Positions 3,343 to 54,060 of a stretch of 64,000 bases of DNA are shown piece by piece. The translations under genes and the position numbers were made by a program. The notes beneath the pieces are model-generated. The model was given only the letters and a program-made list of their open reading frames with translations, was not told where the DNA came from and searched no databases. The DNA lies in IMG/VR virus record IMGVR_UViG_3300032236_001850, positions 124,001 through 188,000 of that record; one strand, 5' to 3'. Each line of letters starts with the position of its first letter. Position 1 is the stretch's first letter.

Positions 3343-3965
3343 AAAAATCCTCTTTTTAATGCCCTTCCTATATGGGAAAAATCCTTTATTCCCGCTTTAT
3401 CCATGATTTTTTTCTTTAAATCCGGACACGGATTCAGAATATAAGTTGATGTTGGTTTGTCCTTAAAGAATTTAATAACCTTCGATTCTGGGATTCTTGT
3501 TATTAAAGATTTTATAAGATCTGGATTTCCACAGTCTATTAGCGGCTCCAAATTTTCGGGATCATCCAGGTATTTTCTATTTGACATATCATAGTCATAA
3601 AGTTCCTTAACTGCAAATTTTTCTATCCCTCTAAATATTGACTCGTAATCGGAAACACTAGACACACTAAATCCCATAATGTATTCCCAATCAAAATCTT
3701 TAAATTCGTAAATACCAATTCTTATCTTATCGTTGGATGTTGGTGTCATCTCTCTCAATTCATACTTCAACACAGTTTCATCCTCACCATGTGGATAAAT
3801 GGTTATCTTAGTTACCTTGCCGTCCTGTTTTTGTTCTGTGTTAATATCCGCCCATTCGGAAATTTTCTTATATGCATCAAGATTTCCCAATGAACCAACA
3901 TAAGGTCTATAAACATTCTCGTTGATTTTTCTTCCGAAAAGATTGAAAGATTTAATTATTCTCAT
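3339..3965 (-). CDS. Hypothetical protein, CTS-like leader plus TGIKD C-terminal module
   Basis: MRIIKSFNLF...; ends KAGIKDFSHIGRALKRGFL; GATATATA at 3970-3977 on minus strand. Confidence 0.85.
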   Translation of the reverse strand: MRIIKSFNLFGRKINENVYRPYVGSLGNLDAYKKISEWADINTEQKQDGKVTKITIYPHGEDETVLKYELREMTPTSNDKIRIGIYEFKDFDWEYIMGFSVSSVSDYESIFRGIEKFAVKELYDYDMSNRKYLDDPENLEPLIDCGNPDLIKSLITRIPESKVIKFFKDKPTSTYILNPCPDLKKKIMDKAGIKDFSHIGRALKRGFL

Positions 3966-3983
3966 CCCTTATATATCCCAAAT

Positions 3984-4069
3984 AAAAAAGGTTGGAGTAG
4001 CGAATTCCAACCTTTACATAGCCGTAACTATTCCGGTCCTAAAATCTGACTTCAGAGAGTCAGCCGGAT
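3984..4069 (-). ncRNA. Candidate structured small RNA (unidentified)
   Basis: AATATATA promoter variant at 4074-4081 (minus); stems UCCGG/CCGGA and CUGACU/AGUCAG, a UACG-loop hairpin, then terminator GGUUGGA/UCCAACC-U6; no ORF. Confidence 0.45.
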
Positions 4070-4137
4070 GTTCTATATATTCTTTGCATCCCAATTTTTA
4101 GGTCGAAATTTGATATATAAACCAAAAACATAATAAA

Positions 4138-4773
4138 ATGAGAAAAGCATGCATCGTGTTATTTCTTTTGGTTTTTGGAGTGATTAATGCTCAAGACACC
4201 ATAAGACTTAAACACACAAACTACACTGCTGTCTACAGCAAGACTTTAAATTACCCAGTACTTGTTGAATGGTGGGAAACCAAAGCAAAGGACGGATGTC
4301 CAAGCCCATTAAAAAGAAAAGATGAATTCAAACCAGATCCGCTTCTACTTAAGGAGACAGATATAGCGAAGGATTATGTTGGATCAGGGTATGACAGGGG
4401 ACATATGTGCCCAGCAGCTTCCAATCTATGTAGTGGTGATAAAGTTCAATCTGAATGCTTCTATTTCAGCAATATGGCACCGCAGCTTCACAGATTAAAT
4501 GCTGGAGATTGGAAAGTATTAGAGATGAAAACAAGAGAGATAGCGATTGCTAATGACAGTGTACATGTTTGGTGTGGTAGCTTGGGAGAGATTAAAAAAG
4601 TTGGTAAGATATCAATACCTAAAACCTGTTGGAAAGTGGTTTACATCAAGAAAACAAAAATCTTTACAGCATACATTTTCAATAATGATGATTCAAAACC
4701 AGACGGAATAGAAAACAATATAGTTCCTCTGGAAGCAGTAGAAAAATTAACAGGATATAAATTTAAAAGGTAA
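4138..4773 (+). CDS. DNA/RNA non-specific endonuclease (NucA/EndA type) with signal peptide
   Basis: YDRGHMCPA motif, FYFSNMAPQ, LNAGDWKVLE; hydrophobic N-terminus ending VINA-QD. Confidence 0.92.
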   Translation: MRKACIVLFLLVFGVINAQDTIRLKHTNYTAVYSKTLNYPVLVEWWETKAKDGCPSPLKRKDEFKPDPLLLKETDIAKDYVGSGYDRGHMCPAASNLCSGDKVQSECFYFSNMAPQLHRLNAGDWKVLEMKTREIAIANDSVHVWCGSLGEIKKVGKISIPKTCWKVVYIKKTKIFTAYIFNNDDSKPDGIENNIVPLEAVEKLTGYKFKR

Positions 4774-4806
4774 AAAAAAGGCTGATATCAATATCAGCCT
4801 TTTTTT
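4773..4806. terminator. Bidirectional intrinsic terminator
   Basis: A7-GGCTGATAT-caa-TATCAGCC-T run between convergent genes. Confidence 0.85.
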
Positions 4807-5569
4807 ATATCATTCCAGATTTTAGTTTTCTACCTATTTTTCCGTAATCTTTTAACCCTGTCCTTTCCAATACTCCAGCCTTAAATTTCTCAAGATTGTC
4901 GATCTTATAGAGTTCCAATGGATTTTTCTTGAAAAAATTATCAATATCCTCAAGAACATCATAATTTATAGGATCGCCGATTTTTAATTTAAGTATGTAC
5001 TCTAGATATTTTCTAATGAAATTGGAATATTCCGGAAGATGTAATTTTTTACTCTCCAAACCAGCATAAGTCATATAAAATCTACCCCCATATTCTCTAA
5101 AAGCTAATAAAATTTGGGATATAATAAGATGAAAAATATAGTTATTATCTCCGCTAACCTCTATTTGTCTCTCCCCAGCTTCATCAGTTCCTATATAATC
5201 AAATTTATTCTCGTCAGATTCGCCAATTACAAATCTTATTTTATAAACATTTGAACCTGATCCAAGACCAGGAGAGCAACTCATTATTTTTTCATTGGGT
5301 TCTGGGTTTAGAGCCTGGGTAAAAGCATAACTTATTGTTCCCCAAAGGAAATATGTATTTAATATAACATCAAGTGTCTTGAGCCCATTTGATTTATAAT
5401 CATAGATATCACCAGCATCATAATTAGGAAAAACATGTAGACCAACAGCTTGAGAGTGATTATTTTTATCCACTCTAAAAGTTATACATTTTTCCAAATA
5501 ATGGTATATTGGAATACGATCAATTGATTCTGATTCAAAAAGTTGATCAAAGGATTTTATTATTTTCAT
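4805..5569 (-). CDS. Hypothetical protein, CTS-like leader plus TGIKD module
   Basis: MKIIKSFDQLFES; ends RTGLKDYGKIGRKLKSGMI. Confidence 0.85.
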   Translation of the reverse strand: MKIIKSFDQLFESESIDRIPIYHYLEKCITFRVDKNNHSQAVGLHVFPNYDAGDIYDYKSNGLKTLDVILNTYFLWGTISYAFTQALNPEPNEKIMSCSPGLGSGSNVYKIRFVIGESDENKFDYIGTDEAGERQIEVSGDNNYIFHLIISQILLAFREYGGRFYMTYAGLESKKLHLPEYSNFIRKYLEYILKLKIGDPINYDVLEDIDNFFKKNPLELYKIDNLEKFKAGVLERTGLKDYGKIGRKLKSGMI

Positions 5570-6684
5570 TATATGAGCCCTCCTCTTAATTTTCTACCGA
5601 TAGCACTAAAATCTTTAATCCCAGTTCTTCTTAAAACACCAGCTTTATATTCTGGATAATCATCAAGTAAATAAAGATCCGTTGGATTTTTTTTCATATG
5701 GTCATCTAGGATTTTTTCAACTTCGGAACTCAAAGATGAACCAAGAAGATAACTTCTAGCAAAATCGGTGAGCAAATTGGATTTTTCATTCATATCTATA
5801 TAGTTTTCACCTATATAAATATTCAAATGTTCGATTTCCGTAGTGATTATCTTCTCTATTTCTTTAACCACCTCATCAATAGTTTTATAACCAAGATAAA
5901 TTTTAATATCTCTCATCTTTTTACTACGACCATGAAGATCAAGGTTTCGATCGACATTTTTGCTTGTTACCTTTTTACCTTCCCCTTTCGGTATAATTCG
6001 GATTTCATTTGCATTGGTACCAATCATGTATTGATTATTGTTTCTTTTTACAGCACCGCTTATTTCCAATATAAAATCAGGGAAAATACGTATGCCAGCT
6101 AAGGCCAAATAACGAAAATTTATCACAATCCCAGCATTTTTACCTTGCATATAAATACCACTAATCGAATTAATATGATCTATCAATTTGGATTTACCCT
6201 TGATTAAAGAGAAATCTGTTATGATGTCGCTTCTTCTTTCTTTTCTGTATACAACATATAAATCGATTGGGAGTTCCCATATCTTGGAAAAGATGAAAGC
6301 ATCATCGTCAACAAGCTCTTTTGCTTCCTTCCTATTGAAATCATTAGGTGCAAACTTATAAACAATATCTCTGATGAAAGTTTGAAGCAGATCCACAAGA
6401 TTCGAAGAGTATTTCATACCGTAATGGCTCCCACTTGAAACAAAGGTAAAGTGCCAATCGCTTCCAGATTTATAAAAGTATGGGCTGCCCGGATTGTTAA
6501 CATAGTCACTGGTGTTTTTGTTTATCAACACATTTATTCTACCGGTTCTTGTTGGGTAAAGTCTATACCATTTTTGAATTTGCTCGAGTTCTCTAGTTCC
6601 TTCGGCTAGTCTGAAGAACTCCTCACAGTCCTCATTCATTTTGGCTGCTTCAAAAAGTTCATTAAAAGTTTTAATTATTCTCAT
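5569..6684 (-). CDS. Hypothetical protein, CTS-like leader plus TGIKD module
   Basis: MRIIKTFNELFEA; ends RTGIKDFSAIGRKLRGGLI; GATATATA at 6689-6696 (minus). Confidence 0.85.
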   Translation of the reverse strand: MRIIKTFNELFEAAKMNEDCEEFFRLAEGTRELEQIQKWYRLYPTRTGRINVLINKNTSDYVNNPGSPYFYKSGSDWHFTFVSSGSHYGMKYSSNLVDLLQTFIRDIVYKFAPNDFNRKEAKELVDDDAFIFSKIWELPIDLYVVYRKERRSDIITDFSLIKGKSKLIDHINSISGIYMQGKNAGIVINFRYLALAGIRIFPDFILEISGAVKRNNNQYMIGTNANEIRIIPKGEGKKVTSKNVDRNLDLHGRSKKMRDIKIYLGYKTIDEVVKEIEKIITTEIEHLNIYIGENYIDMNEKSNLLTDFARSYLLGSSLSSEVEKILDDHMKKNPTDLYLLDDYPEYKAGVLRRTGIKDFSAIGRKLRGGLI

Positions 6685-14357: not shown

Positions 14358-15179
14358 TTATTTTGTTCCAGTTGAAAGTCCAAATGCTGCCTGAGCGTCC
14401 TTTGCATTAACGTCTCCTCCATCCTCGCCGAAAAATTTTCTAGCCCCACTTACTATTTTACCCAGTAATCCTCCAGGATTTTCCTTTGCATCTTTCTCAT
14501 CATTATTAGAAGTTGCAGAGTCACCTCCGATAATATCATCTCCAGGTAAACGTCTTTCTGCATTATCCTTACTAACATCAATCATATCTTTCTTAACAGC
14601 TTCAGTGAAGCTATTATCAAAATCGCTACTTCTGTCCGGGAAGTAATCTATAAATCCAAGAAGACCGTCAACTAGGACAGATCTATTATATGCACCTACA
14701 CCCTGTCCGTCTTTTAGTCTAACATTACCCTCAATTGTTGTGAATTTCTTACCGTTATAATCAACACTAGTAACTATTCCAGCATGACCACCACCCTCTC
14801 TTTTTGCAATCATTATTTGACCAGGTTTAACTAGAGAAAAATTAGATCTTGCCTGATCTGCAGTTATCTTTTTACCCCCGGTTTTTTCCCATTCCTCCAA
14901 TGCAGAACCAGTTTTATATACTGGATTGGTGATTCCACTTTTTTTACTGAACTCGTCAAAAATATAGTAAATGAAAGCCATACACCAAGGCTGACCGTCA
15001 CTTATTCCTACTGATCTCTGAAATTTATTAACATCGGAACCACTATTGTTACCGACCTCCTTCGCTTTTATATTATTTGATATAACCTTAGCTAGCTCAG
15101 ATCCAGCTCCTGATGGATTATCTAATTTGAATCCGGAGTCTTCATTTATAAATTCATTGAAACTCTTTAATCTTTCCAT
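14358..15179 (-). CDS. CHAP-domain peptidoglycan hydrolase with CTS-like leader
   Basis: GQPWCMAF (Cys), GGHAGIV (His), TIEGN; leader MERLKSFNEFINE. Confidence 0.88.
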   Translation of the reverse strand: MERLKSFNEFINEDSGFKLDNPSGAGSELAKVISNNIKAKEVGNNSGSDVNKFQRSVGISDGQPWCMAFIYYIFDEFSKKSGITNPVYKTGSALEEWEKTGGKKITADQARSNFSLVKPGQIMIAKREGGGHAGIVTSVDYNGKKFTTIEGNVRLKDGQGVGAYNRSVLVDGLLGFIDYFPDRSSDFDNSFTEAVKKDMIDVSKDNAERRLPGDDIIGGDSATSNNDEKDAKENPGGLLGKIVSGARKFFGEDGGDVNAKDAQAAFGLSTGTK

Positions 15180-15704: not shown

Positions 15705-15735
15705 AAAAAGTCCGATATTGCTATCGGACTTTTTT
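15705..15735. terminator. Bidirectional intrinsic terminator
   Basis: A5-GTCCGATA-ttgc-TATCGGAC-T6. Confidence 0.85.
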
Positions 15736-16414
15736 ATGCGGTTAGTGTTTTGTTTATATTGTTTATTGTTGATGTTAATTTTCTTTCGTAATCTGGAGCT
15801 GAAGCATATCTCTGATTGTTTACATTAACAAACTTTTTTAATAACTCAGGAGCAGTTTTATTCTGGGAAGGAACCACATAACTCTTAGCCATTGTTCTAT
15901 AGTAAGCATCGATACCAGATTGCCAATCATTATGGTTAACAACTGCACCGCTATCAACATTACCAACATTGAATGGATTTTTAGTTCTGATTGGTTTATT
16001 TGATGTGTCTCTACTTAAACCACCCTCCAACGTTAACTGAGCTAAAGCAAGTTGTGGAGGAATATAAGCACCGTGATCCATCACGGCCTTTTTCGCACCG
16101 AGGGCTAGCATTTCACCTTTTATTGGGGATGATGGATTAGTTTTATCAATCCATTTTTGAGCAATATCAGCATAAGCTTTAAATCCTTCAGAAGTTTTAA
16201 GATCCAACGGTGTAAAAATGCTTCCGTCATTAACATTATTTAGACCCAAACTCTTAAGAGCTATTTGATCCGCGGTGTCAGGAATGTCAAGATTCAAAGA
16301 ACCTGTTCCGGTGGTATCGCTATCTGATTTAGCATTAAGTGCATTACTAATTAATAAGGCAGGGTTAAAATCCATCTCATTAATAAAGTCACCAAAAGAT
16401 TTTATGTTGTTCAT
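15734..16414 (-). CDS. GH73 glucosaminidase with CTS-like leader
   Basis: LAQLTLEGG, NPFNVG, YASAPDYERKL; probable start MNNIKSFGDFINE at 16414. Confidence 0.82.
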   Translation of the reverse strand: MNNIKSFGDFINEMDFNPALLISNALNAKSDSDTTGTGSLNLDIPDTADQIALKSLGLNNVNDGSIFTPLDLKTSEGFKAYADIAQKWIDKTNPSSPIKGEMLALGAKKAVMDHGAYIPPQLALAQLTLEGGLSRDTSNKPIRTKNPFNVGNVDSGAVVNHNDWQSGIDAYYRTMAKSYVVPSQNKTAPELLKKFVNVNNQRYASAPDYERKLTSTINNINKTLTA

Positions 16415-29660: not shown

Positions 29661-29884
29661 TGGAAACTACCAAATATTTAGGTACATTAACAAGATCACT
29701 GGTATCGCAGGATTTAGGAAAGGATAAGATTCTATGGGGTGAGGGTGAAACAGTTATAGTAAAAGAAATTGACGGTAATCCAGAATATTTCAGGATAATC
29801 AAACTACAAAACACATTAGGAAATATGGTAGTGCCACACTCAGCATTCATATACTACAGACCAGACTGGGTCAAATTAAGGTAA
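29642..29884 (+). CDS. Small protein, C-terminal WVKLR
   Basis: 19-nt overlap start; ILWGEGETV resembles B2. Confidence 0.8.
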   Translation: MAKYWMMETTKYLGTLTRSLVSQDLGKDKILWGEGETVIVKEIDGNPEYFRIIKLQNTLGNMVVPHSAFIYYRPDWVKLR

Positions 29885-38878: not shown

Positions 38879-39009
38879 TGTGGTTATTAGATTTAATATT
38901 TGGCAGAAGAATAGATCCTAAGGCTGAGGTCGAAAAGGAACTAACATCAAAATACGGAAAGGATTGGCACAGATACGACGGAATCATTCACTGGGTCAGA
39001 CTAAGATGA
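38878..39009 (+). CDS. 43-aa peptide ending IHWVRLR (not in ORF track)
   Basis: TAATG coupling; carries the C-terminal tag. Confidence 0.65.
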   Translation: MWLLDLIFGRRIDPKAEVEKELTSKYGKDWHRYDGIIHWVRLR

Positions 39010-41300: not shown

Positions 41301-41516
41301 ATGGAAATGGACAGATACCCAAAGGACGAGCAACTAACAGGAATTTACGTTAAGAGATGTAAGTGTGGTGCCAGACCTTATATGGACAGAGTTATGTCAG
41401 GTGGCACACCCAAGTGGATCAAGTGCGACAACTGTGGGAGAACTGGTGAGAGTGATCGAGATAAGCAGACAGCAATAGATAATTGGAATCAAAATAAAAT
41501 AGTTTACGAATCATGA
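41301..41516 (+). CDS. Lar-like (restriction alleviation) zinc-ribbon protein
   Basis: KRCKCG...IKCDNCG...AIDNWN pattern. Confidence 0.6.
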   Translation: MEMDRYPKDEQLTGIYVKRCKCGARPYMDRVMSGGTPKWIKCDNCGRTGESDRDKQTAIDNWNQNKIVYES

Positions 41517-44610: not shown

Positions 44611-44677
44611 ATGACATTATCTCTAGGAACTCGGCCAATCCGAGCATATTACTAGGTGATATACGGATGGATTAAAA

Positions 44678-46609
44678 TTAGATAAATCCTCTTTTTAATA
44701 ATTTACCAATCTTTCCGGCGTCCGTTATTCCAGTTCTTTTTATAACACCAGCTTTTACATCAGGATGCGAGTCTAGCATATAAATATCCAATGGCATCTT
44801 TTTAAAATAATCATCCAAAGCAGAGTCACCTATAATCGAATCAAGAAGCGTAAATGTTTCCGGATGTTCCTTAAAAAACTCTATAAATCTACCCACATCC
44901 CATCGACCCTCATTCTGCATAATATATTTTTTACCATTTATATCAAATGAAAAATACTCACCAATCTCATCAGGTAACCCCTTAAGTGATTTCAAATTGT
45001 TACCTGTACAAATAAAATATCCTCCGACCTCCCCCGGTGCTCCTTCTAAGGATTCAAGATTGTTATCATAACATTGGAAGCTTCTACCAACGATTTCAGG
45101 TGCTCCCTCCAGAGTCTTTAATTTGTTTTTTGCACACACAAATGAATTCTGGATTTCCCTAGGTGCTCCCTTCAATGACACAAGTTTGTTATCATTACAA
45201 AAGAAGCCAAAGGAAAATTGAGGTGCTCCCTCCAATGAGGTTAACTCGTTACTGGTACAACTGTATTCACCCTCAACTATCTCCGGACCTCCTTTTAATG
45301 ACTTCAGCTTGTTTTCTTGACACTCAAACCTACCGGCCACCGTTCTAGGTCCTCCCTCCAGTGATTCTAGTTTATTCTTATTGCAAGTGAAATTACCATT
45401 AACAATTTGAGGTGCACCTTCAAGGGTTTTCAAATTGTTGTCTGAACAATCGAAACCATCCACCGTTTGTGGTGAACCTATTAACGATTCTAGATTACTA
45501 TTATTACAAGCTAAACTTTTCACTTTCTCTGGTGCTCCCATCAGGTTTTTTAAATTGTTGTATGAACAATTGAAACCACCATCCACCGTTTGTGGTGCTC
45601 CTTTTAGTGATGTTATATTATTTCTAGAACAGTTGAAATCTCCAGTAACGTGACCAAATTCAATGCCTTGGAAATTTCTTATTCCCCAGTCATTACATCT
45701 AAAAGTTCCTTTTATGTCCACAAGTCCAGTCTCCTCATTTATTTTCCATTCCCCACTAGTGCACTCGTTCAACCATTTAACTTTATTCGATTCCCTTCCA
45801 GTTCCACTAAGATCTTTAATTCCGGTTCTTTTTAGCACACCACTCTTTAAATCGGGAAGGTCGTCTAGTAGATATAAGTCCTCAGGATTCTCAGTGAAAT
45901 GATTGTCAAGTATATTCTCAATTTTTTTACCGTTTACTATTCCAAGATCGGAAAGACATGTCATCACATCCATATCATCTAATTTAATAGCGATACGAAC
46001 AAGGTCAGCAGCAAGATCAGATTTTATCTTAGAATTAAGAACAACCCCAGCTTTAATACCAGGAATTGACAGCAGAAATTCAAGTTGTTTGAATTGTCTA
46101 TAAATTTTGTAAATACCAGAATTTCCAGTAGGAAATCCTCTACTGTCACTGTTTGATGATGTTCTTAATTCTTCCTTAGATAGCTTATCTAGGATTCTTT
46201 TGATCGAAAGATTTAGTCCATAGAATTGTCCATTAAAAACAGCTTCCTTCAATGTAGAATATGAGATCTTTGAAACATATGTCATTTGTGCAATACTATA
46301 CAATATCAACTTTGTCATTGCATCGTTCATCTCCTCTTGTGTGGAGAAAGGCATATCTTTCTCAATTGTAAAACTTCCATAAATCAGGTTGACCTTTCCA
46401 TCACCGGAAGGCTTTAATGAACATGAGTAGGAGGTTCCAAAATTATATTCTCTCACCCCCAGGGAACTACTCTTGGCACCATCTCCCAAAAATTTCCTAG
46501 CCTTCTTATAAATAGGAAGTTTACTCAATGTTTCAAAAGACGGAAACTCCTCCTTGTCCTTTTTGGTTGCGCCTTCAAACAACTCATTAAATGTTTTTAT
46601 TCTTCTCAT
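44678..46609 (-). CDS. Chimeric LRR protein: CTS leader, domain, TGIKD module, 22-aa LRRs, second TGIKD module
   Basis: About 11 repeats of CxxNxLxSLxGAPxxVxGxF; module at ILDNHF...RTGIKD and at the C-terminus. Confidence 0.88.
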   Translation of the reverse strand: MRRIKTFNELFEGATKKDKEEFPSFETLSKLPIYKKARKFLGDGAKSSSLGVREYNFGTSYSCSLKPSGDGKVNLIYGSFTIEKDMPFSTQEEMNDAMTKLILYSIAQMTYVSKISYSTLKEAVFNGQFYGLNLSIKRILDKLSKEELRTSSNSDSRGFPTGNSGIYKIYRQFKQLEFLLSIPGIKAGVVLNSKIKSDLAADLVRIAIKLDDMDVMTCLSDLGIVNGKKIENILDNHFTENPEDLYLLDDLPDLKSGVLKRTGIKDLSGTGRESNKVKWLNECTSGEWKINEETGLVDIKGTFRCNDWGIRNFQGIEFGHVTGDFNCSRNNITSLKGAPQTVDGGFNCSYNNLKNLMGAPEKVKSLACNNSNLESLIGSPQTVDGFDCSDNNLKTLEGAPQIVNGNFTCNKNKLESLEGGPRTVAGRFECQENKLKSLKGGPEIVEGEYSCTSNELTSLEGAPQFSFGFFCNDNKLVSLKGAPREIQNSFVCAKNKLKTLEGAPEIVGRSFQCYDNNLESLEGAPGEVGGYFICTGNNLKSLKGLPDEIGEYFSFDINGKKYIMQNEGRWDVGRFIEFFKEHPETFTLLDSIIGDSALDDYFKKMPLDIYMLDSHPDVKAGVIKRTGITDAGKIGKLLKRGFI

Positions 46610-46744
46610 CCGTTATATATCCAAATTAAATGAAACTACATATACCCATGTGGCAATCACAGACTGAAATACATAGATAAAATAGAATCAAAAGAACCTC
46701 ATTCGAAGTGAACCTGTCTAAAATCCGATACCGATATATACAAA

Positions 46745-47152
46745 ATGAAACACATCAACACATTCTACCAACACATTAACGAATCAAAATCTCAAATAGC
46801 GGAAGCCATAGAGGTTAACGCAGATGAATTTGAATCAGCCGGTTCAAAAGAAGGAAATTTCATGGTTAATTTTCCAAAGGAAGATGTTGAAATTTTGAAG
46901 GATTTGAGTGAATTGATTGGATTTGAATGCGTTTCACAAGTTGGCATATTTCTAATGGTTACTAGAGATCCAAGCACTAGAGAAAAACCATTGGCATATT
47001 TTTCTAAAACCGCTAAATTATACAGAATGGAAATATACCCGAAGGAGCTTACCTGAGATAAATTATACTACTTGGGTGATTCACCAGAATCATTGATGGC
47101 TGTTTTCCTCAGCTATGTTGGATGGAGACCAGAGTGGATTAAAATAAGATAA
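46745..47152 (+). pseudogene. CTS-leader/WIKIR gene interrupted by in-frame TGA (47054-47056)
   Basis: Frame continues after TGA as DKLYYLGDSPESL...PEWIKIR-TAA. Confidence 0.75.
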
Positions 47153-47156
47153 TCAA

Positions 47157-47584
47157 ATGAAACACATACATACATTCTACCAACACATCAACGAATCTCA
47201 ACTCGAAATAGAATCGACCAATCTACCGGATGGGGTAAAAGAGATTGATGAAGAGGAACTTAAAAAATGGGGAAAAAAGCCACACAAATTCTTACCATCG
47301 GGGATGATGAAGCATTTAAACAGTTTAAAAATTGGACTGGAGTGACCAAATCTGAGGATCCCCGGGATTTGCTAGTCCTTAAATCATCATCCACCTCAGA
47401 GGAATATCAATGGTGCTTTGTTCTTTGGACCAAGGAAGAAGATGAGGAGAAAGCAAGACGATTTCTTTCAAGAACACTAGAGGGTGTTTTTGTAACATAC
47501 ATTATCACCTCACCGTCACAAAAAGTTAGAGAGCAGCTAATGCACTACATCAACGATTATGTTAAATGGATCAAAATCAGATAG
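47157..47584 (+). pseudogene. CTS-leader/WIKIR gene split by -1 frameshift at A-AAA-AAG (47273-47279)
   Basis: Leader in frame of 47157; WIKIR in the -1 frame (47267..47584). Confidence 0.75.
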
Positions 47585-47605
47585 ACAAATAAAACATAGA
47601 CAATA

Positions 47606-48046
47606 ATGAAAAACTTAATGATTTTTACTGATTTTTTAAAAGAATCAATTAATTCAGGTGGAATGCCACATCGAAGATATGAAGAAATAACTAAAGATCA
47701 ATGGCGAGAGAAAAAAGAAACACTCCAATGTGTTAGCTTGACAAATGATGAGATAGAGTCAATAGATGAAATATATGAATTTATAAGGGATGTTATATAC
47801 CCAAAAGCAGAAAGAATAAAGTTTTGGGAGTTTTCTCAGAAAGACACTCAATATCTCATCGAAATACGTGATTTAAACATTATGATTACTAAATATTCAC
47901 CATCAATGTGGTTAATTTTTACTAATAGGAATGAGGATGTAGAAGATGAACATTTTTATATTGCAACTTCATTAAAGGAAACAATCGATCTTACAGCATA
48001 TCTTGCGGGTGAATTATTTCATATCGAATGGATCAAAATAAGATAG
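47606..48046 (+). CDS. CTS-leader/WIKIR protein
   Basis: MKNLMIFTDFLKES...IEWIKIR. Confidence 0.85.
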   Translation: MKNLMIFTDFLKESINSGGMPHRRYEEITKDQWREKKETLQCVSLTNDEIESIDEIYEFIRDVIYPKAERIKFWEFSQKDTQYLIEIRDLNIMITKYSPSMWLIFTNRNEDVEDEHFYIATSLKETIDLTAYLAGELFHIEWIKIR

Positions 48047-48050
48047 AAGA

Positions 48051-48683
48051 ATGAAACACATCCATACATTCTCACAACACATCAACGAGAGCTCCTCTCA
48101 GGAGATCATGGACTTCTGCAAGAAGTACAAGATTTCAATTGAACAGTTTAGAGGACAGGAGGAAATCCCAGGTGATTTTAGAAAACTTTCAAATCTAAAA
48201 TCCATTCCTTCAGGTTTCAACCCAAAGGTTGAAGGGAATCTGACTCTTTCCTCGATTTACAGCTTACCTGATGGGTTTTCACCCGTTGTTGGTGGAGATC
48301 TGGAACTGCATGAACTGAATCATTTGCCAGAGGGATTCTCACCCACTGTGGGAAGAGATCTACATCTGAACTATCTAAATCGTATTCCATATGAATTCAC
48401 TGTTAATGTGGGAGACAATCTGATTTTAGATAATGTGTATGAGGTTGGGAAGGGATTCTCACCCACTGTGGGCGGCAATCTGGATCTAGGATCACTCAGA
48501 ATTTATGCGGAAGGATTCTCACCCATCGTGGGCGGGAATCTAATCTTAAATAAAATGGAAAGCATTCCGCTAAAAGGTGTTTCGCTAAAAGGAGTTAAAG
48601 GAAAGATAGAACTTTTTCACAATTACAATCGTGTAAATCTAGAAACCATAGCGGGTGATATAAAATGGATCAAAATAAGATAG
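48051..48683 (+). CDS. CTS-leader/WIKIR protein with 22-aa LRR-like repeats
   Basis: Repeats LxxLPEGFSPxVGGDLxL; DNA repeat ggattctcaccca about every 66 bp. Confidence 0.85.
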   Translation: MKHIHTFSQHINESSSQEIMDFCKKYKISIEQFRGQEEIPGDFRKLSNLKSIPSGFNPKVEGNLTLSSIYSLPDGFSPVVGGDLELHELNHLPEGFSPTVGRDLHLNYLNRIPYEFTVNVGDNLILDNVYEVGKGFSPTVGGNLDLGSLRIYAEGFSPIVGGNLILNKMESIPLKGVSLKGVKGKIELFHNYNRVNLETIAGDIKWIKIR

Positions 48684-48695
48684 GGTATATAGCAC

Positions 48696-49517
48696 ATGAA
48701 AAGAATACTAACATTCCACCAGCTATTTGAAGCAGCCAAACCAAAGGACACATCTTGGATGCCAACCCCCGCGGAGATAAGTCAATTGGAAATTTTTCAA
48801 AATCTGAGAGATGATCATCTTATACGTTTATCCGAACCATACCTCTTAACACAGGGTCAGATAGAAAGGAATGTGAGATCAATAAGTTTTTCAACAGACA
48901 CCAATAACCTTTATAGACTGGAGCCAAATTCAGATGGCACAATCAACATCAAATTTGGAAGAAGCTACATAGCCAAAAATAAGCCTTTCAAAAACCAGGA
49001 GGAAATGACGGATGTTATTATTTACTTAATGATCGTAACAATAGCAATTTATGATCCTGTATGGAGTCGTAAGCCACACAATCCACCCAAAAGAACTCCT
49101 TTCAATGACGATCACGTGAAACTAAATGGGGAATTGGAGAGAGGTGATCTCGAAGGCTTGCTAAACGGCATCACAGAGCTTATGAAATCCAAATTTGGAT
49201 TCTGTGAGGAAAGACTGGTCCAGATTGCGATCATTCTGATGTGGTACATGAAGTCAGCCACACAGGAGGCAAAAAACAACTTCATAAAGCAACTGATCGT
49301 CAATGTGACAGCAGAGAGAATGTTCTTGCATTGGTGCCATCTGCCTAAAATTTTATCTCATCGCCAACCCTTCGTGTCGATGCCTGCAGTTACGGAAGGT
49401 CTCTCCATGGCATTCTCAGATTTTCTTAATAACAATGGGGATGCTCCAATGCCACCAGCTCTGGGGGAGTTCCTTTCCAAGATAACCGATGGGTTCAGAT
49501 GGATTAAAATCAGATAA
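48696..49517 (+). CDS. CTS-leader/WIKIR protein
   Basis: MKRILTFHQLFEA...FRWIKIR; N-terminal part resembles that of 44678..46609. Confidence 0.85.
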   Translation: MKRILTFHQLFEAAKPKDTSWMPTPAEISQLEIFQNLRDDHLIRLSEPYLLTQGQIERNVRSISFSTDTNNLYRLEPNSDGTINIKFGRSYIAKNKPFKNQEEMTDVIIYLMIVTIAIYDPVWSRKPHNPPKRTPFNDDHVKLNGELERGDLEGLLNGITELMKSKFGFCEERLVQIAIILMWYMKSATQEAKNNFIKQLIVNVTAERMFLHWCHLPKILSHRQPFVSMPAVTEGLSMAFSDFLNNNGDAPMPPALGEFLSKITDGFRWIKIR

Positions 49518-49576
49518 CCAGATAAATAAATCATCACTGATTAAAGTGGGATATATAAATAAAATAAAACCAAAAA

Positions 49577-50062
49577 ATGAAACACCTAATCGCCTTTGAG
49601 ATTTTTGAAAATGAGAATATGGAATCTCTAATTCCTAAAATTGCTATTTTTAGCGAGGGTGACTACTATAAACTAAAGGAATATATAAAATCCAATAACA
49701 TAAAGACTGATCTCATTCCCCACCATTTCCCATACGAGGAATATTACAGAGATAATATTAAACGTGGTCAGAGGGGCAATAATTTTTTCTATATCATCAA
49801 CGATAAGGTTATGTTGTACCCAAGTCCAGGATACGATAAAAAATTGAAAAAACTAACAGATAGGGATCTAAATTTTCCTAAATCCCACAGAGCTGCATAC
49901 ATTAAAGATTTCAGAAACATCCCACTAGAGGAACTTTACAACAACTCGGAAGAAATACTTGGGTACTCAATATTCCTACTGGACAAACTTATAACAAAGG
50001 CGAAGCAAATGACAAGAAGCAAATTAACACCATTTGAGGTGACTCTATTCGATAGAGATTAG
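49577..50062 (+). CDS. Hypothetical protein with CTS-like leader
   Basis: MKHLIAFEIFEN; GATATATA at 49550. Confidence 0.82.
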   Translation: MKHLIAFEIFENENMESLIPKIAIFSEGDYYKLKEYIKSNNIKTDLIPHHFPYEEYYRDNIKRGQRGNNFFYIINDKVMLYPSPGYDKKLKKLTDRDLNFPKSHRAAYIKDFRNIPLEELYNNSEEILGYSIFLLDKLITKAKQMTRSKLTPFEVTLFDRD

Positions 50063-50065
50063 CAC

Positions 50066-50521
50066 ATGAAACACATACACACATTTCACCAACACGTCAA
50101 CGAATCCCAATCTCTACCTTCAGGGGTAAGCAAGGTGACAGCCGATGAGTATACAAAACAAAAATGTGTTCCTCTATCCCAGGAGGAAACTGAAAACATC
50201 TTATTCTTAACTAATATAGTGGAACTTGCTTCTTCGACAGATCCACAGAGGAAAAACGCGGATAGCGAGGACAATCAGATCTATCTTTGCGCTGGTTTTT
50301 ATCCTTATGGAGCTATTCCGCCATGGGCATTCTTCGGAAAGTCAAAGTCAGGAATTTACTATCTATCAGCTAATCCCACACGATTAACGGACACAGAAGG
50401 CCAGGAAAGCAACTATTACGCTGCAAACTCATTGCAACCTCTAATTTCAATTGCTCTTGATATGTTCATTAAACTTGGAATGGTTGATACCTCCGGAATC
50501 AGCTGGATCGAAATCAAGTAA
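50066..50521 (+). CDS. CTS-leader protein ending WIEIK
   Basis: MKHIHTFHQHVNES...ISWIEIK. Confidence 0.85.
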   Translation: MKHIHTFHQHVNESQSLPSGVSKVTADEYTKQKCVPLSQEETENILFLTNIVELASSTDPQRKNADSEDNQIYLCAGFYPYGAIPPWAFFGKSKSGIYYLSANPTRLTDTEGQESNYYAANSLQPLISIALDMFIKLGMVDTSGISWIEIK

Positions 50522-50665
50522 ACCTCTAAGGGGCCGGCCACCGGAGATCTAACATCCAACATCATTATAGCACGTTTAAGGGACAATAATCTACAAACCC
50601 ATATCTACATCTTATTAGAGAGATATAAACAAGCTACACTCAAATAAACAACCGCATATAAGCAT

Positions 50666-51028
50666 ATGAAACACATCCTACATATAGACACGTATCAACA
50701 CATGAACGAGTCAATAACAAACCCATCATGGGAGAGAGAAGGCACAAGAGTCACACTGGCAGATATAGAGCCACACCTAGAAGAGGAGTTGCTAATCCAA
50801 CCGGACTCCATAGCACATCTACTCATACCCACAGAGAGGGATCCTAGAAGAGTGGCACAAGCCAATCTGGATCACCCAATCATACTCACAAGAGACAAGG
50901 GCCAGCTCACAAGCATACTAGATGGACAACACAGAGTCACAAAAGCCATAGAGCAAGGCAAGTGGGTAAAGGCAAGACAACTCGATCTAGACACAGTCCC
51001 AGAACACATAGCCAAGGTGCTCAGATAA
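50666..51028 (+). CDS. ParB/Srx N-terminal-like protein with CTS-like leader
   Basis: RVAQANLDHPIIL...ILDGQHRVTKA. Confidence 0.75.
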   Translation: MKHILHIDTYQHMNESITNPSWEREGTRVTLADIEPHLEEELLIQPDSIAHLLIPTERDPRRVAQANLDHPIILTRDKGQLTSILDGQHRVTKAIEQGKWVKARQLDLDTVPEHIAKVLR

Positions 51029-51543
51029 CCCAACTCTCATAGAGGCATTCTAAAGGGACTTAGGAAGCAAACCATATAGAGAGATAGTCAGAATAATATA
51101 ACACAGACACGGCCAGGTAATCGCGTTTAACGACCCCCTTCGGAAGCCCCTCTGCATGTGTGAGTTACCACCCAGGGCTGTCCCAACAAGATTTCCTCGT
51201 CGCCCCGATTTCCCATTTCATTCCACTTCTCTCCACTTTGTTCCACTGGGCAAGAGTTTCCACACAGAAACCCACGTTTTCTTTAGGAAAAACCAAATCT
51301 TTTATATATCCGTGATTTTGGGACGAGGTTCCCTGAACACCCATCACTATCTCGCCCCGAACCATGCCTCTTCCCTACATCTCTCTATGTGGAATGGATC
51401 TCCTGCCTCTCTATTAGAGACGGAACATTCTATGTGGCATTATCTCTCTATGCTCTCTCTATAGGAATGACTACCGGGTTGGCCGGCCCTCACCCCTATC
51501 TTGGCCCCAAATTCCCCCATTGCCGGCAGAGGATATATAGTGT
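51029..51543. other. GC-richer non-coding locus with skew flip and CTCTCTAT repeats (candidate origin/terminus)
   Basis: CTCTCTAT at 51381, 51407, 51444, 51455, inverted copy at 51076; TGGCCGGCCC at 51480 inverted to 50530. Confidence 0.45.
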
Positions 51544-52185
51544 ATGAGACACCTTAAGATTTTTGAAATGAACCCAGCCTTCTACGAGGATCCACCGGAA
51601 CCAAAACGTGAGGGAGCGGATGTGGAGTACCCAGAGCATGAGCAGCTCTTCTCCCCTGTGTTCTGCCATGAGGGGTATCCAGAAGAAGATAAAGTCAGAG
51701 GAGAGAAAGGTTACCCTGACTTTGCCATAGTGATGGACAAGACACCTCAGAAAGCCATATGGGTTGTGAGAGATATTGACGATGTCATTCCCGAGAGCTA
51801 CCTGACCTATTGGGAAACGTCCGAAGGAGGCGAGCATGTCCAAGACACCAACTCCATCCTGAACTTTGCCACTGACGAATTCAAAGCCGGTAGATGGGTG
51901 GATGGCTTTGATGCTTGGGACGAGGATGAATGGGCAGTGGATCTTGTGAAGATCACCACTGTGGAAGATGTGGATTCCCTTATCCAAGATCTCTCCAACT
52001 TCATTAACCCGAGCCACGCCTCCTACTATGGCAAGGTGAGAAATCCCAAGATCAAAGATCACTACAGAATTAGTCACGTTCCAGGTGAGGGCGAGATCTC
52101 TTTGGCGAAGAGAGCAATCAGAGCGCTAGAGATATACAAGAGAAGGATTGAATCAAACACCGTCGGCGGGTCCACACCGGCTTAA
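51544..52185 (+). CDS. Acidic hypothetical protein with CTS-like leader
   Basis: MRHLKIFEM; GATATATA 4 nt upstream. Confidence 0.82.
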   Translation: MRHLKIFEMNPAFYEDPPEPKREGADVEYPEHEQLFSPVFCHEGYPEEDKVRGEKGYPDFAIVMDKTPQKAIWVVRDIDDVIPESYLTYWETSEGGEHVQDTNSILNFATDEFKAGRWVDGFDAWDEDEWAVDLVKITTVEDVDSLIQDLSNFINPSHASYYGKVRNPKIKDHYRISHVPGEGEISLAKRAIRALEIYKRRIESNTVGGSTPA

Positions 52186-52274
52186 TCCCAGCCCACTATG
52201 GAGTCCACTCTCCCAAGTCCAGTCCGGAACCCGGCCTCATGAATGGCCTTTCATTTTTCAAAAACAAAAGTAAT

Positions 52275-52315
52275 AAAAATCCTCGAGATAAAAAAATATT
52301 TCGAGGATTTTTTTT
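52275..52315 (+). terminator. Terminator overlapping next promoter
   Basis: AAAAATCCTCGA...TCGAGGATTTTT-T run. Confidence 0.8.
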
Positions 52316-52365
52316 ATTCGAAAGGATTTTGTATATTTGCAATGTAAACAATAAGGCCCCAGGTA

Positions 52366-52390
52366 CATACTATGTTACTAACATACTATG
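52366..52390. repeat. Nested palindrome element, copy 2
   Basis: catactatgttactaacatactatg. Confidence 0.9.
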
Positions 52391-52415
52391 TCTGAGACCA
52401 CGGCAAACACGAACT

Positions 52416-52619
52416 ATGCGCAGACTTAAGAACGGATGGGAGATCGCGGGAGCGACATCAATATGTATTGCTCTCGCGAGCATCTTTATATACATCATGT
52501 GGGAACTCGGCTTATATGGGATGCCTAGTACTACCGATGTGGTTGTCTCAGTAGTACTCACAGCTGTCACACTCTTTCTCTTTATCTGGAGCCCACCCGA
52601 CGAGAACTCTAATACATAG
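52416..52619 (+). CDS. 67-aa two-TM protein flanked by palindrome repeats
   Basis: MRRLKNGWEIAG...; stop codon lies inside repeat copy 3. Confidence 0.7.
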   Translation: MRRLKNGWEIAGATSICIALASIFIYIMWELGLYGMPSTTDVVVSVVLTAVTLFLFIWSPPDENSNT

Positions 52620-52640
52620 TATGTTACTAACATACTATGT
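52614..52640. repeat. Nested palindrome element, copy 3 (perfect 13-bp arms)
   Basis: ACATAGTATGTTA-C-TAACATACTATGT. Confidence 0.92.
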
Positions 52641-52683
52641 CTGGGACTGACCACGAACACGTACACGAACTAATTAATAGAAA

Positions 52684-52989
52684 ATGAAAACATATCAACT
52701 TAAAACACCTTACTCAGAGTACACCGTTATATTATCGGGCGGCACGTATGCGAACGGACGTCAAGCTATTCGCATACTAGACGCGGAGGATGGGTTACCA
52801 GTTATGACTGCCACTGTGAATGTCCCTGAGGTGGATCTGGAACCAGGTGAGATCATCATCAAGAACTACTCAGAGAACGAAGGGTGCTTGCCCTTTCTCA
52901 TCACCAACGGTGTTGTCTCCTCTGTCGAGAGATGGGTTGGCCACGGTATGGCTGTTGTGAAACTCCTGATAGACATAGACGATATATAG
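52684..52989 (+). CDS. DUF4313-like protein
   Basis: YANGRQAI...ATVNVP...IIKNYSENEG. Confidence 0.65.
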   Translation: MKTYQLKTPYSEYTVILSGGTYANGRQAIRILDAEDGLPVMTATVNVPEVDLEPGEIIIKNYSENEGCLPFLITNGVVSSVERWVGHGMAVVKLLIDIDDI

Positions 52990-53005
52990 AGGAAAACTCT
53001 ATAGA

Positions 53006-53380
53006 ATGAAACACCTAATGCTTTTTGAAAGCTTCTTTCGCCGCGGTGCGATGGATCCGACCGCCTTGCAATTGGTCAAAATCGGCGGTGCGGTTAATCC
53101 GGCTTTAGGCTTCCTTAAAAAACACGACATAGATACCCTTACCGAAGCTGGTATAGAGACCGAAGTGGTTGGAGAAATCACAGGGAAAGACGACTACGCT
53201 TTCTGGGATATCAACGGTGTTTTATCGGATCCCTATTATGTTGCTTTCACTCATCCTGGCAAGGAGAATTCCCTTATGACAAAGGAGAAGAATTTCGAGA
53301 TACATCCTGGTAAAATATACTTCCGAAGAAAGGGTGGTTGGGCGAAAGAAAACGTCAGTGATTTCATCCAATCAAGATAA
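53006..53380 (+). CDS. Hypothetical protein with CTS-like leader
   Basis: MKHLMLFESFF; GATATATA at 52981. Confidence 0.8.
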   Translation: MKHLMLFESFFRRGAMDPTALQLVKIGGAVNPALGFLKKHDIDTLTEAGIETEVVGEITGKDDYAFWDINGVLSDPYYVAFTHPGKENSLMTKEKNFEIHPGKIYFRRKGGWAKENVSDFIQSR

Positions 53381-53397
53381 TTTGACAATCGTTAAAG

Positions 53398-53425
53398 AAA
53401 AGCCTGATTTTAGTCAGGTTTTTTT
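53398..53425 (+). terminator. Intrinsic terminator
   Basis: AGCCTGA-ttttag-TCAGGTT-T run. Confidence 0.8.
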
Positions 53426-53563
53426 GTGCGTGCAGGTAGCGCTCGCTTCCTGTAATCTACCGTGGGAAATTTGAGGTTAAAATCAGGGGGGTAAAAATAA
53501 TTTGAAATTTTTTATTTTTATATGAAAAAATGTCATATATTTGCAAAACAAAATCACATCAAC

Positions 53564-53791
53564 ATGGAACTTTACATCTTCAAAATCATGGACGAACCCA
53601 ACACCTATGTGAAGGTGAGCACCAAAACATTTAAGTGTCGCCGTACGAAGAATATAAATGATTCAAGTTGGTGGTTTACAAAGAGGAATGCAAAGTCTTG
53701 GGAATTCTCGATTAAAACGAAATTCCCAAGTGCCACAATGATCCCCGTGGATATGTCATTAACCGAGGTTAAATTCCAATCTATCAAATGA
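53564..53791 (+). CDS. Hypothetical protein, C-terminal FQSIK
   Basis: ATG 53564 after early promoter. Confidence 0.78.
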   Translation: MELYIFKIMDEPNTYVKVSTKTFKCRRTKNINDSSWWFTKRNAKSWEFSIKTKFPSATMIPVDMSLTEVKFQSIK

Positions 53792-54060
53792 TGAAGGATT
53801 TGATAAACATAGGTCTTCACAATCACATGTCAGCGGTGCTCAAGGCAGACCTCCTGGTTATCGACGACAAGGTCTATAAAGACCGGTCCGGTAAATATGA
53901 TGGGGCAGGAGAGAACCCAAGGGTTCTAATCCCGGAAGAAGAGCTAGACAAGGTTAGAGTGGAAGTCAATGAGGCAGGAACAATATTATCCTATGATGGG
54001 TCCCAAGGAAATATTATTCTTATATCAACAGCACCAATTAAATTTCAACAAATAAAATGA
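53788..54060 (+). CDS. Hypothetical protein, C-terminal FQQIK
   Basis: ATGA coupling. Confidence 0.78.
   Translation: MMKDLINIGLHNHMSAVLKADLLVIDDKVYKDRSGKYDGAGENPRVLIPEEELDKVRVEVNEAGTILSYDGSQGNIILISTAPIKFQQIK

Follow-up and report, generated by a model that had tools for sequence, protein, structure and literature searches.

Short N-terminal labels that direct otherwise unrelated proteins into a phage head are best described for the internal proteins of T-even phages (IPI, IPII, IPIII, and more than 30 variants). The T4 capsid targeting sequence, MKTYQEFIAE, is cut once after it (PMC8442874). Its residues 4 and 7 act in targeting, residues 8 and 10 govern processing, and the prohead protease gp21 cuts after L/I-X-E (PMC9026906). 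The loci encoding these proteins are hypervariable and share only the targeting sequence (PMC3012670; PMC2839356). Giant phages related to phiKZ (SPN3US, phiKZ, 201phi2-1) provide a second case, in which a T4-related prohead protease cuts after Glu at a 3-residue motif and many head-internal, ejected proteins occur in paralogue families, some with identical N-terminal propeptides on diverged bodies (PMC5694885). At the DNA level, the PeSL mobile regulatory cassettes of T4-type phages are short conserved sequences that bound single ORFs and mediate gain, loss, and swapping of genes in hyperplastic regions (PMC2839356). Polymorphic toxin and effector arrays (Rhs, CDI, and similar) are likewise modular proteins with conserved ends and variable parts, diversified by recombination at conserved sequence.

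To investigate a row of small, doubly tagged genes in an uncultured phage, we analyzed a 64,000-nucleotide stretch (the window; positions 124,001 to 188,000 of IMG/VR record IMGVR_UViG_3300032236_001850). The window lies in a complete 434.5-kb Lak-related megaphage that reads under the standard genetic code. A preliminary description, made from the sequence alone, had reported seven co-directional genes at 46745-50521 with related leaders, six of them ending in W-I-K/E-I-R/K, with middles ranging from a small domain to LRRs. That observation is confirmed by our analysis: seven genes carry an MKH(I/L)xTFxQH(I/V)NES-type leader and six carry the 5-residue tail. Three corrections apply. Two of the genes are interrupted, the third of the leaders given as MKHIHTFxQHINES has V at position 11, and the array continues outside the range that had been described, with an eighth gene (G8) on one side and a tail relic on the other. 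The features of the region, with genes numbered G1 to G8 and with L149, L150, L152, and L178 denoting related phages used for comparison, are as follows (the arrow marks the putative cleavage point).

44666-44685, + strand: relic of a tail-coding end (WIKIR-stop) with no ORF; the first bases of a 2,069-bp segment (44664-46732) that L149 lacks.
44678-46609, - strand: 643-aa leader-bearing protein (MRRIKTFNELFE↓G) with 21-residue LRR-like repeats and the other tail type (..GKIGKLLKRGFI); its N-domain is about 30% identical to that of G5; absent from L149, whereas a 329-aa LRR gene sits at this place in L178.
46733-46740, + strand: GATATATA upstream motif, 4 nt before the G1 start.
46745-47152, + strand: G1, small-domain family; leader MKHINTFYQHINES, tail EWIKIR; interrupted by an in-frame TGA at 47054-47056; the relative has an intact 135-aa orthologue.
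47157-47584, + strand: G2, small-domain family; leader MKHIHTFYQHINES in the frame of 47157, tail KWIKIR in the frame of 47267, the frames differing by a 1-nt loss in the A-run 47273-47278; the relative has an intact 141-aa orthologue.
47606-48046, + strand: G3, small-domain family, 146 aa; leader variant MKNLMIFTDFLKES, tail EWIKIR.
48027-48046, + strand: left copy of the identical 20-nt tail-coding repeat (AATGGATCAAAATAAGATAG) that flanks the G4 cassette.
48051-48683, + strand: G4, leader MKHIHTFSQHINES, 20-residue repeats forming a predicted LRR-like solenoid, tail KWIKIR; absent from L149, L150, and L178.
48664-48683, + strand: right copy of the identical 20-nt tail-coding repeat that flanks the G4 cassette.
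48696-49517, + strand: G5, 273 aa; LFE↓A-type leader MKRILTFHQLFEAA, an N-domain shared with the 643-aa protein, tail RWIKIR.
49550-49557, + strand: GATATATA upstream motif before G6.
49577-50062, + strand: G6, 161 aa; leader MKHLIAFEIFENE (MKHLIAFEIFE↓N), no tail; replaced in L149 by a minus-strand 137-aa gene plus two family members of 143 and 137 aa.
50066-50521, + strand: G7, small-domain family, 151 aa; leader MKHIHTFHQHVNES, tail SWIEIK; a leader chimera.
50666-51028, + strand: G8, 120 aa; leader variant MKHILHIDTYQHMNES, a DGQHR (ParB-like) motif, and a match to phrog_17560; absent from L149 and L178.
51544-52185, + strand: 213-aa leader-bearing gene with GATATATA 4 nt upstream; part of the variable island.
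53006-53380, + strand: 124-aa leader-bearing gene (MKHLMLFESFF), at which synteny with the relatives resumes.

We next asked whether the tags occur more often than expected by chance. A strict leader pattern fits 26 of 619 gene starts in the genome, and up to 47 genes carry the leader in all, whereas shuffled N-termini give 0.25 and only 3 of 2650 internal Met positions fit. In contrast, the WIKIR-type ending occurs only in this array in the whole genome, apart from two looser W-V-[KR]-L-R endings. Conservation is at the protein level, as Ser14 is encoded by TCA, TCT, TCC, AGC, and AGT, and Ile codons vary. The same interrupted G1 and G2 are present in a second assembly, ENA ERZ28594702 (434,721 bp), which is 100% identical over 14.3 kb.

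To understand how the array has changed over time, we compared it with its relatives. The locus is not invariant among them; invariance had been set beforehand as the condition that would refute the preliminary interpretation. Array content differs between the window, L149-L152, and L178, while the flanks are 95-99% (L149) or about 75-85% aa (L178) conserved. The breakpoints sit in the conserved ends. G4 is present or absent between the two identical 20-nt tail-coding repeats, the first ≈65 nt of G7 match the relative's 143-aa paralogue better than its own orthologue, and the 643-aa gene is an indel that begins at a tail relic. In addition, an 82%-identical G4 orthologue carries another leader type, and more distant G4 homologues have neither leader nor tail.

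The preliminary interpretation, an accordion-like effector array diversified by recombination between conserved ends in an arms race, is thus only partly supported. Recombination at the ends holds, but a recent, accordion-like expansion is not supported: in the tree, paralogues of one genome are not sisters and each has its own orthologues elsewhere, indicating that the paralogues are old. Orthologue dN/dS is 0.05-0.72, not above 1. Furthermore, G1, G2, G3, and G7 are full-length homologues of one small-domain family rather than proteins with unrelated middles. The terms effector and arms race remain inferences by analogy.

Because the leader resembled the T4 signal, we compared the two directly. 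The leader consensus, MKHIxTFExFxNE, aligns from T6 as TFESFLNE against T4 TYQEFIAE, and all four positions mapped in T4 (PMC9026906) match in kind. F7 is at least 90% conserved, and [ILV]-x-E ends at residue 12-13 and is followed by S/A/G/N. However, this match was noticed after the fact and spans only 8-10 residues, and in the array's own subtype the position equivalent to T4 F7 is His. The leader also looks like an add-on to the proteins that bear it. It is predicted to be disordered, with pLDDT under 50 for residues 1-14 whereas the core is confident, and the G4 homologues show that it is portable.

The genome encodes head machinery of the T4 kind. A Peptidase_S77 domain (PF03420, 36.3 bits, over its cut-off) lies in a 654-aa protease-scaffold fusion placed before a gene for a gp23-like capsid protein. 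The scaffold part of the fusion holds at least 10 YSEYLAEN repeats (YLAE↓N), and [ILV]xE[SAGN] occurs there 3.67 times per 100 aa, against 0.46 genome-wide. The N terminus of the capsid protein has LIE↓S and LNE↓S, and the homologous places in LR756500.1 and PTm1 also have (I/L)xE. A complex prediction of the protease with the leader gave no verdict.

Leader genes also share an upstream motif with structural genes. The 8-mer GATATATA precedes the portal, tail sheath, head-closure-like, fibre-like, and protease-scaffold genes, and it is linked with leader genes at an odds ratio of 12.4 (p=2e-13), whereas none of the 57 genes behind a host-type TAnnTTTG motif has a leader. The timing of this motif is inferred from which genes it precedes. 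The known structural proteins themselves lack the leader, so it is not a general late-gene feature.

The proteins bearing the leader include four cell-wall enzymes (CHAP, glucosaminidase, SLT, and Tlde1/YkuD-like), a DEDD exonuclease, and LRR-like proteins, a plausible ejected set. Some leader-like proteins, however, are enzymes one would not expect in a capsid, namely a DNA ligase and an AAA ATPase, although their leader matches are also the loosest. For G4, no Pfam family was found at E<=0.1, but it has seven or so 20-residue repeats, and its Atlas model (pTM 0.82) resembles an LRR_1 cluster with a TM of 0.71 and phage clusters without a family with a TM of 0.8, consistent with a predicted LRR-like solenoid. 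Arrays of diverse small genes carry the same leader in other 260-460-kb phages of this clade, one of which also showed the long S77 fusion. In contrast, the leader profile found nothing in the isolated relatives PTm1, MaF61, and PAU or in Lak-A1.

Compared with the T-even internal proteins, the locus shares a short N-terminal label on otherwise unrelated small proteins, an aromatic pair followed by (I/L)-x-E, a gp21-type S77 protease and gp23-type capsid protein, and loci that differ between close relatives with exchange at conserved flanking sequence. It differs in that the leader is 3 residues longer and marks about 4-8% of all genes of a 434-kb phage rather than three genes, many payloads also carry family-specific C-terminal tails, and exchange happens inside the coding tags rather than at promoter/stem-loop elements. 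Sizes of the strict-leader proteins run from 101 to 643 aa, and most of the matured payloads would be acidic (pI 4.2-6.4 for 19 of 26), whereas the internal proteins of T4 are small and highly basic. Basicity is a feature of IPI-III and not a requirement for targeting, since foreign proteins fused to the signal are packaged. In the phiKZ-like phages, the cleavage motif is A/S-x-E, propeptides are often more than 100 residues long, the phage lineage is different, and neither a common short leader across dozens of genes nor a C-terminal tail has been described. PeSLs are non-coding early promoter plus stem-loop terminator units flanking the ORF, whereas here the repeated sequences are the coding ends themselves, and no inverted repeat, stem-loop, or terminator-like site lies at the cassette borders; attC-type imperfect inverted repeats, as in integron cassettes, are likewise absent from the cassette ends. 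Relative to polymorphic toxin arrays, there is no delivery domain, no toxin domain, and no paired immunity genes, and the element is phage-borne. The best structural neighbor of the small domain is a Rhs immunity protein at only Z 6.1, which is not evidence of kinship.

Together, these data suggest that the array is a hypervariable set of cassettes, each composed of a 13-residue N-terminal leader, a payload, and a short C-terminal tail, and that the leader is a capsid targeting sequence of the T4 kind. In this view, the leader would dock the newly made protein to the scaffolding core of the prohead, and the S77 protease would then cut it off after the conserved Glu (..(I/L/V)-x-E↓S/A/G/N). The matured payload would stay in the head and enter the host with the DNA, where it would act early, as the internal proteins of T4 do, for example against host defenses. 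The leader- and tail-coding sequences serve as short homologies where cassettes are gained, lost, and recombined between paralogues and between phages. What the analysis itself establishes is the tags and their genome-wide excess, the protease, scaffold, and capsid context, the shared upstream motif, and the breakpoints; targeting to the capsid, cleavage, presence in the virion, ejection, and any anti-defense role are inferred from sequence and by analogy. We assign this reading a probability of roughly 0.55. It does not explain the W-x-K/E-I-K/R tail, which is the most conserved part of the small-domain family after the leader and also sits on the unrelated G4 and G5 payloads.

Other explanations appear less likely. 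The array could be an ordinary, old, fast-diverging paralogue family whose conserved termini belong to the fold or to an oligomer interface, without a targeting role, at a locus that varies simply because it is dispensable. The full-length homology of G1, G2, G3, and G7, the 33 clusters of this family elsewhere, of uniform length and with both ends conserved, and the age of the paralogues and the mostly purifying selection on them are consistent with this idea. We nevertheless consider it unlikely, because the leader sits on at least 26 unrelated proteins in this genome and on diverse proteins in other phages, is predicted to lie outside the fold, and is swapped between 82%-identical orthologues, while the tail is found on unrelated payloads. 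An address label for another destination, such as a phage-built compartment, the membrane or periplasm by a non-Sec route, or a phage chaperone, with the tail as a second sorting or binding motif, is similarly doubtful. Four leader-bearing proteins act on peptidoglycan and would need to reach the cell wall, and several distinct family-specific tails exist (WIKIR, ..IGRKLKSGLM, ..LGDLGF, ..NADDFGFFDN), as expected of short binding motifs. However, the leader has no hydrophobic core, unlike the true signal peptides in the same genome (for example, MKKIILFLAIITLVSC), no compartment or export machinery was identified, and this view does not explain the fit to the mapped T4 residues or to the protease's apparent (I/L)xE preference.

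Still less likely is that the leader is an expression device for late genes, an N-terminal coding sequence tuned for translation start in a host that lacks strong Shine-Dalgarno use, with no role in the protein. The link with GATATATA, the A-rich codons (ATG AAA ...) at the leader start, and the A/T-rich tail codons just before the next start would fit. Yet synonymous codons, including those of Phe, vary while residues stay fixed, with Ser14 using both TCN and AGY, and mRNA effects do not explain the conserved aromatic and aliphatic residues and the Glu at positions 7-13. Moreover, abundant late structural genes (capsid, portal, sheath) lack the leader, and the tail is kept where no gene follows, at G7 and at G5 in L149. 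An assembly artifact or a decaying pseudogene cluster of no function, suggested by the two interrupted genes, is very improbable given the identical second assembly, the intact orthologues under purifying selection in relatives, and the 33 clusters across metagenomes.

A broader possibility, which is more speculative and which we regard as rather unlikely although not excluded, is that a clade of 260-460-kb Bacteroidota-type megaphages uses one short, T4-derived N-terminal address label to load dozens of unrelated proteins, about 4-8% of the proteome, into the capsid for co-injection, including cell-wall enzymes, a nuclease, LRR-like binders, and many small inhibitor-like domains. A second layer of short C-terminal tails (WIKIR, IGRKLKSGLM, LGDLGF, ADDFGFF) would sort or anchor the cargo classes, and the tags would double as recombination sites that let phages trade cargo. 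If true, the leader would allow the whole injected protein set of uncultured megaphages to be read from sequence alone.

Why huge phages have such large genomes, and what they deliver into cells at the first moment of infection, are open questions, and none of this clade is in culture. A sequence label that marks capsid cargo would turn the ejected proteome of uncultured megaphages into something predictable and would point to a large pool of candidate anti-defense and host-takeover proteins. It would also extend the T4 capsid-targeting principle, already used to package foreign proteins, to a distant lineage with a far larger cargo list. Independently of function, the locus is a clean natural example of coding-end homologies acting as cassette borders.

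To place the array in its genomic context, we first examined the whole IMG/VR virus record, of which the window is bases 124001-188000 and which is 434,509 bp long, carries direct terminal repeats, is rated 100% complete, and has a G+C content of 35%. A simple gene call gives 619 genes at 92% density. Because G1, the first gene of the array, contains an in-frame TGA, we considered an alternative genetic code, but this was rejected: under code 11, stop-free frames of at least 100 aa already sum to about the genome length, and stop usage is TAA 336, TAG 82, and TGA 68. The capsid protein is closest to that of an uncultured 462-kb phage, LR756500.1 (45%), and to those of the Prevotella Lak megaphages (44%), followed by phages of Flavobacterium, Tenacibaculum, and Chryseobacterium, and by phage PAU. 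A near-identity search in isolated phages returned no match.

We next examined the upstream regions of the genes, which contain three classes of motif that together look like a three-stage transcription programme. The 8-mer GATATATA, enriched 20.7-fold upstream of genes, precedes 73 genes, including structural and leader-bearing genes. A second motif, TATATTTG(CA), precedes 57 genes and fits the Bacteroidota TAnnTTTG type; we take the host to be a member of the Bacteroidota. A third, GTAATTAA, precedes 23 genes clustered at 179-193 kb of the genome. Examples of upstream motifs lie at window 52308-52342 and 53512-53546.

The observation in the preliminary description, of seven co-directional genes sharing a leader and mostly a tail, is confirmed, with leaders and tails as described there, although two of the genes are interrupted and the array runs on beyond the range described. 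The features concerned, in window coordinates, are as follows.
44666-44685, a WIKIR-stop relic of the tail without an ORF
46745-50521, the seven co-directional genes G1 to G7
47054-47056, the in-frame TGA of G1, behind which the conserved family sequence, including EWIKIR, continues
47262-47279, the run AAAAAATGGGGAAAAAAG, in which the frame of G2 shifts so that its leader and tail lie in different frames
50666-51028, G8, with a leader variant
51544 and 53006, positions of further leader-bearing genes

In L149, a relative whose contig carries the same locus, both interrupted genes are intact, at 135 and 141 aa, with a sense codon at the first site and one more base in the A-run. A second assembly (ENA ERZ28594702) is identical over 14.3 kb, both interruptions included, and assembler error is therefore unlikely. 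Two further ORF ends outside the array, at window 29867-29884 and 38992-39009 (+), read W-V-K-L-R-stop and W-V-R-L-R-stop and are looser versions of the tail.

To understand more about the central parts of these proteins, which the preliminary description had presented as divergent, we compared them with one another, reading G1 and G2 through with X at the break. The middles are not all unrelated. G1, G2, G3, and G7 align over their full length at 21-37% identity, and a profile built from them finds 33 clusters among 1.84 billion representatives, all of 127-161 aa and nearly all with the leader MKH(L/I)xxFxQH(L/I)NES and a tail W-x-(K/E/Q)-I-(K/R/G). In a 36-sequence alignment with a mean identity of 24%, the only invariant or nearly invariant columns are M1, K2, H3, E13, W(-5), and I(-2). 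In the tree, paralogues of one genome are not sisters, and each has its own orthologues elsewhere; the family is therefore old and not a recent tandem burst.

AlphaFold2 with this alignment predicts a confident alpha/beta core over residues 20-136 (mean pLDDT 76.6), whereas the leader (residues 1-14) and the last residues score below 50. Fold searches of the small domain gave no convincing match, and its fold is left unassigned: Foldseek against PDB and BFVD returned nothing at E<=0.001 and only weak rows for the T4 MotA C-domain, a VIA-wide search gave a best Z of 6.1 to a Rhs immunity protein, within the range of common arrangements, and an Atlas search by shape gave TM<=0.43 by query. Pfam and PHROGs searches of G1-G7 likewise returned nothing usable. 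G4 is different, being an LRR-like solenoid, and G5 shares its N-domain with the neighboring 643-aa minus-strand protein, which has another tail type. We also considered G5 as a metallopeptidase, but the Atlas leads were weak (scores 0.81-0.84, TM 0.3-0.4) and there is no HExxH in the sequence, so this identity was dropped.

The leader is a genome-wide label. A strict pattern fits 26 gene starts, against 0.25 in shuffles and 3 of 2650 internal Met positions, and a broader pattern fits 47. Codon usage shows selection on the residues and not on the DNA. When we searched IMG/VR for only the first seven codons, 25 loci were returned, and in 25 of 31 of the ORFs found there the sequence continues E(S/N)F(L/V)NE; arrays of four and seven such genes occur in fragments of roughly 260-300-kb phages. 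LR756500.1 has arrays with MKYIKEYEEFxxE leaders and its own tails (..NADDFGFFDN). By contrast, a search for an isolated relative with virion proteomics that carries the leader found no match in PTm1, MaF61, PAU, or Lak-A1, and a literature search for the leader strings found no paper.

From sequence and genomic context we infer that the leader is a capsid targeting sequence of the kind found in T4, whose internal proteins share only the 10-residue signal MKTYQEFIAE, which is cut once (PMC8442874). In that signal, residues 4 and 7 target, residues 8 and 10 govern processing, and gp21 cuts after L/I-X-E (PMC9026906). From T6, the leader reads TFESFLNE against TYQEFIAE. The genome also has an S77 protease domain at the head of a 654-aa protease-scaffold fusion (G000:C1:296799-298763 of the genome, locus L169), followed by a gp23-like capsid gene. 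The scaffold part holds at least ten tandem 14-residue repeats (..YSEYLAENLDKxIS..), each with Y-L-A-E-N and a putative cleavage site, which is eight times the genome's density of (I/L/V)xE followed by a small residue. LR756500.1 and PTm1 have similar fusions, and the repeat resembles the second half of the leader (F-x-x-L-F-E-N against Y-x-x-Y-L-A-E-N). The N terminus of the capsid protein has two sites of (I/L/V)xE followed by a small residue, conserved in place in LR756500.1 and PTm1. A complex prediction of the protease domain (residues 1-210) with G7 residues 1-40 gave a score of 0.01, which is evidence neither way.

The upstream motif GATATATA precedes the portal, sheath, head-closure-like, fibre-like, and protease-scaffold genes and is linked with leader genes at an odds ratio of 12.4 (p=2e-13), whereas no gene behind a host-type motif has a leader. 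The structural proteins themselves lack the leader, which is therefore not a general late-gene feature. Leader proteins include CHAP, glucosaminidase, SLT, and Tlde1/YkuD-like cell-wall enzymes, an OmpA-like domain, and a DEDD exonuclease; a DNA ligase and an AAA ATPase have looser leaders. The CHAP-domain and glucosaminidase-domain proteins, at window 14358-15179 (-) and 15734-16414 (-), both start with the leader (MERLKSFNEFINE, MNNIKSFGDFINE) and sit behind GATATATA, as do the SLT and Tlde1/YkuD-like proteins elsewhere in the genome, and these cell-wall enzymes have no signal peptides. All of this is consistent with cargo made during head assembly, docked to the core, trimmed, and ejected, but none of it is a direct demonstration.

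To determine how the locus varies, we compared it with contigs from other samples that carry it. Against L149, the flanks are 95-99% identical, but the 2,069-bp segment 44664-46732, with the 643-aa gene, is missing from L149, and this segment starts at the tail relic. G4 is also missing, with the breakpoint falling in the tail-coding sequence; in the window, two identical 20-nt copies flank the 637-bp cassette. G6 is replaced by a minus-strand gene plus two further family members, with tails WDKIK and WAKIK. The first ~65 nt of G7 match the relative's 143-aa paralogue (30 of 30 in one stretch) better than its own orthologue (25 of 30), and the genes after G7 differ. After the G5 tail, the relative (L149:5088-5139) has ACGAAACACATAGACA, which looks like a decayed leader start with ATG changed to ACG and is followed by a terminator hairpin, and a similar remnant follows the G2 tail in the window (47566-47614). 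A more distant syntenic relative, L178, has four family members and lacks G4, G5, G6, and G8. In addition, an 82%-identical G4 orthologue keeps the WIKIR tail but carries the other leader type (MKKILTFSELFEA), whereas homologues at 40-49% identity have the same repeats with no leader, no tail, and a different C-terminal domain.

The part of the island that differs most between relatives coincides with a rise in G+C, to 0.43-0.46 at window 50001-54000 against about 0.35 elsewhere, and may be recently acquired DNA. Here, the only two GGCCGGCC sites in the window (0.07 expected) sit in arms, at 50530-50544 and about 51474-51489, that can pair with each other, and L178 has one extra base in each arm, a compensated change. 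The arms enclose 50545-51473, with G8, which is absent from L178, and a G+C-rich noncoding block at about 51085-51530. That block has long invariant stretches shared with L178, whereas the neighboring protein is only about 47% identical. Examined as a possible structured RNA, the block (51085-51530) gave no Rfam match and a folding energy no better than shuffles (MFE z=0.69). A 35-nt repeat at 52364-52398 and 52613-52647 (94% identical and internally palindromic, so that it also scores as an inverted repeat) flanks part of a 126-aa ORF with hydrophobic stretches, and a strong terminator-like hairpin lies at 52275-52312. About 5 kb upstream of the array, at window about 41301-41516 (+), a 71-aa gene has a weak precomputed hit to PF14354 (Lar_restr_allev, restriction alleviation).

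The preliminary description had interpreted the locus as an accordion-like effector array in an arms race, diversified by recombination between conserved ends, and this interpretation is only partly supported, its effector and arms-race parts being inference by analogy. Invariance among relatives, which had been named as grounds for refuting it, was not what we found, and breakpoints do fall at the conserved ends, but the family is old. Orthologue dN/dS is 0.40 (G1), 0.05 (G3), 0.30 (G5), and 0.72 (G7), against 0-0.12 in the flanks, and the G7 body has 14 nonsynonymous and 4 synonymous changes. Constraint is relaxed, but positive selection is not shown.

The tail does not follow from the reading of the leader. 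It has no consistent Glu for cleavage, and it is kept where no gene follows, so it is not merely a start region for the next gene. A DNA pattern scan of IMG/VR for the tail-coding sequence did not find it elsewhere but was uninformative, giving 117 hits, all single and none at the end of an ORF. It is one of several family-specific tails in this clade: other leader-gene arrays, at window 2075-6684 (-), G000:C1:197313-199237 of the genome (+), and window 44678-46609 (-), carry different conserved C termini, with ..GKIGRKLK(S/R)G(L/F)(M/I/L) on six genes and ..D(M)xxLGDLGF on two. The acidic-aromatic tails faintly recall C-terminal clamp-binding peptides of T4-type phages.

The nearest known system is the T-even internal-protein loci (PMC9026906; PMC2839356, and through it Repoila et al. 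1994), and the ejection-protein paralogues of phiKZ-like phages come next. The defining features of such internal proteins that can be read from sequence and genomic context are present here, although the trait of being small and basic is not, and presence in the virion, processing, and ejection remain inferred. We found no paper describing such an arrangement. We read the array as differing from the known loci in that a capsid-targeting-type label is used on a far larger and more modular scale, in an uncultured megaphage clade, with an added C-terminal tag layer.
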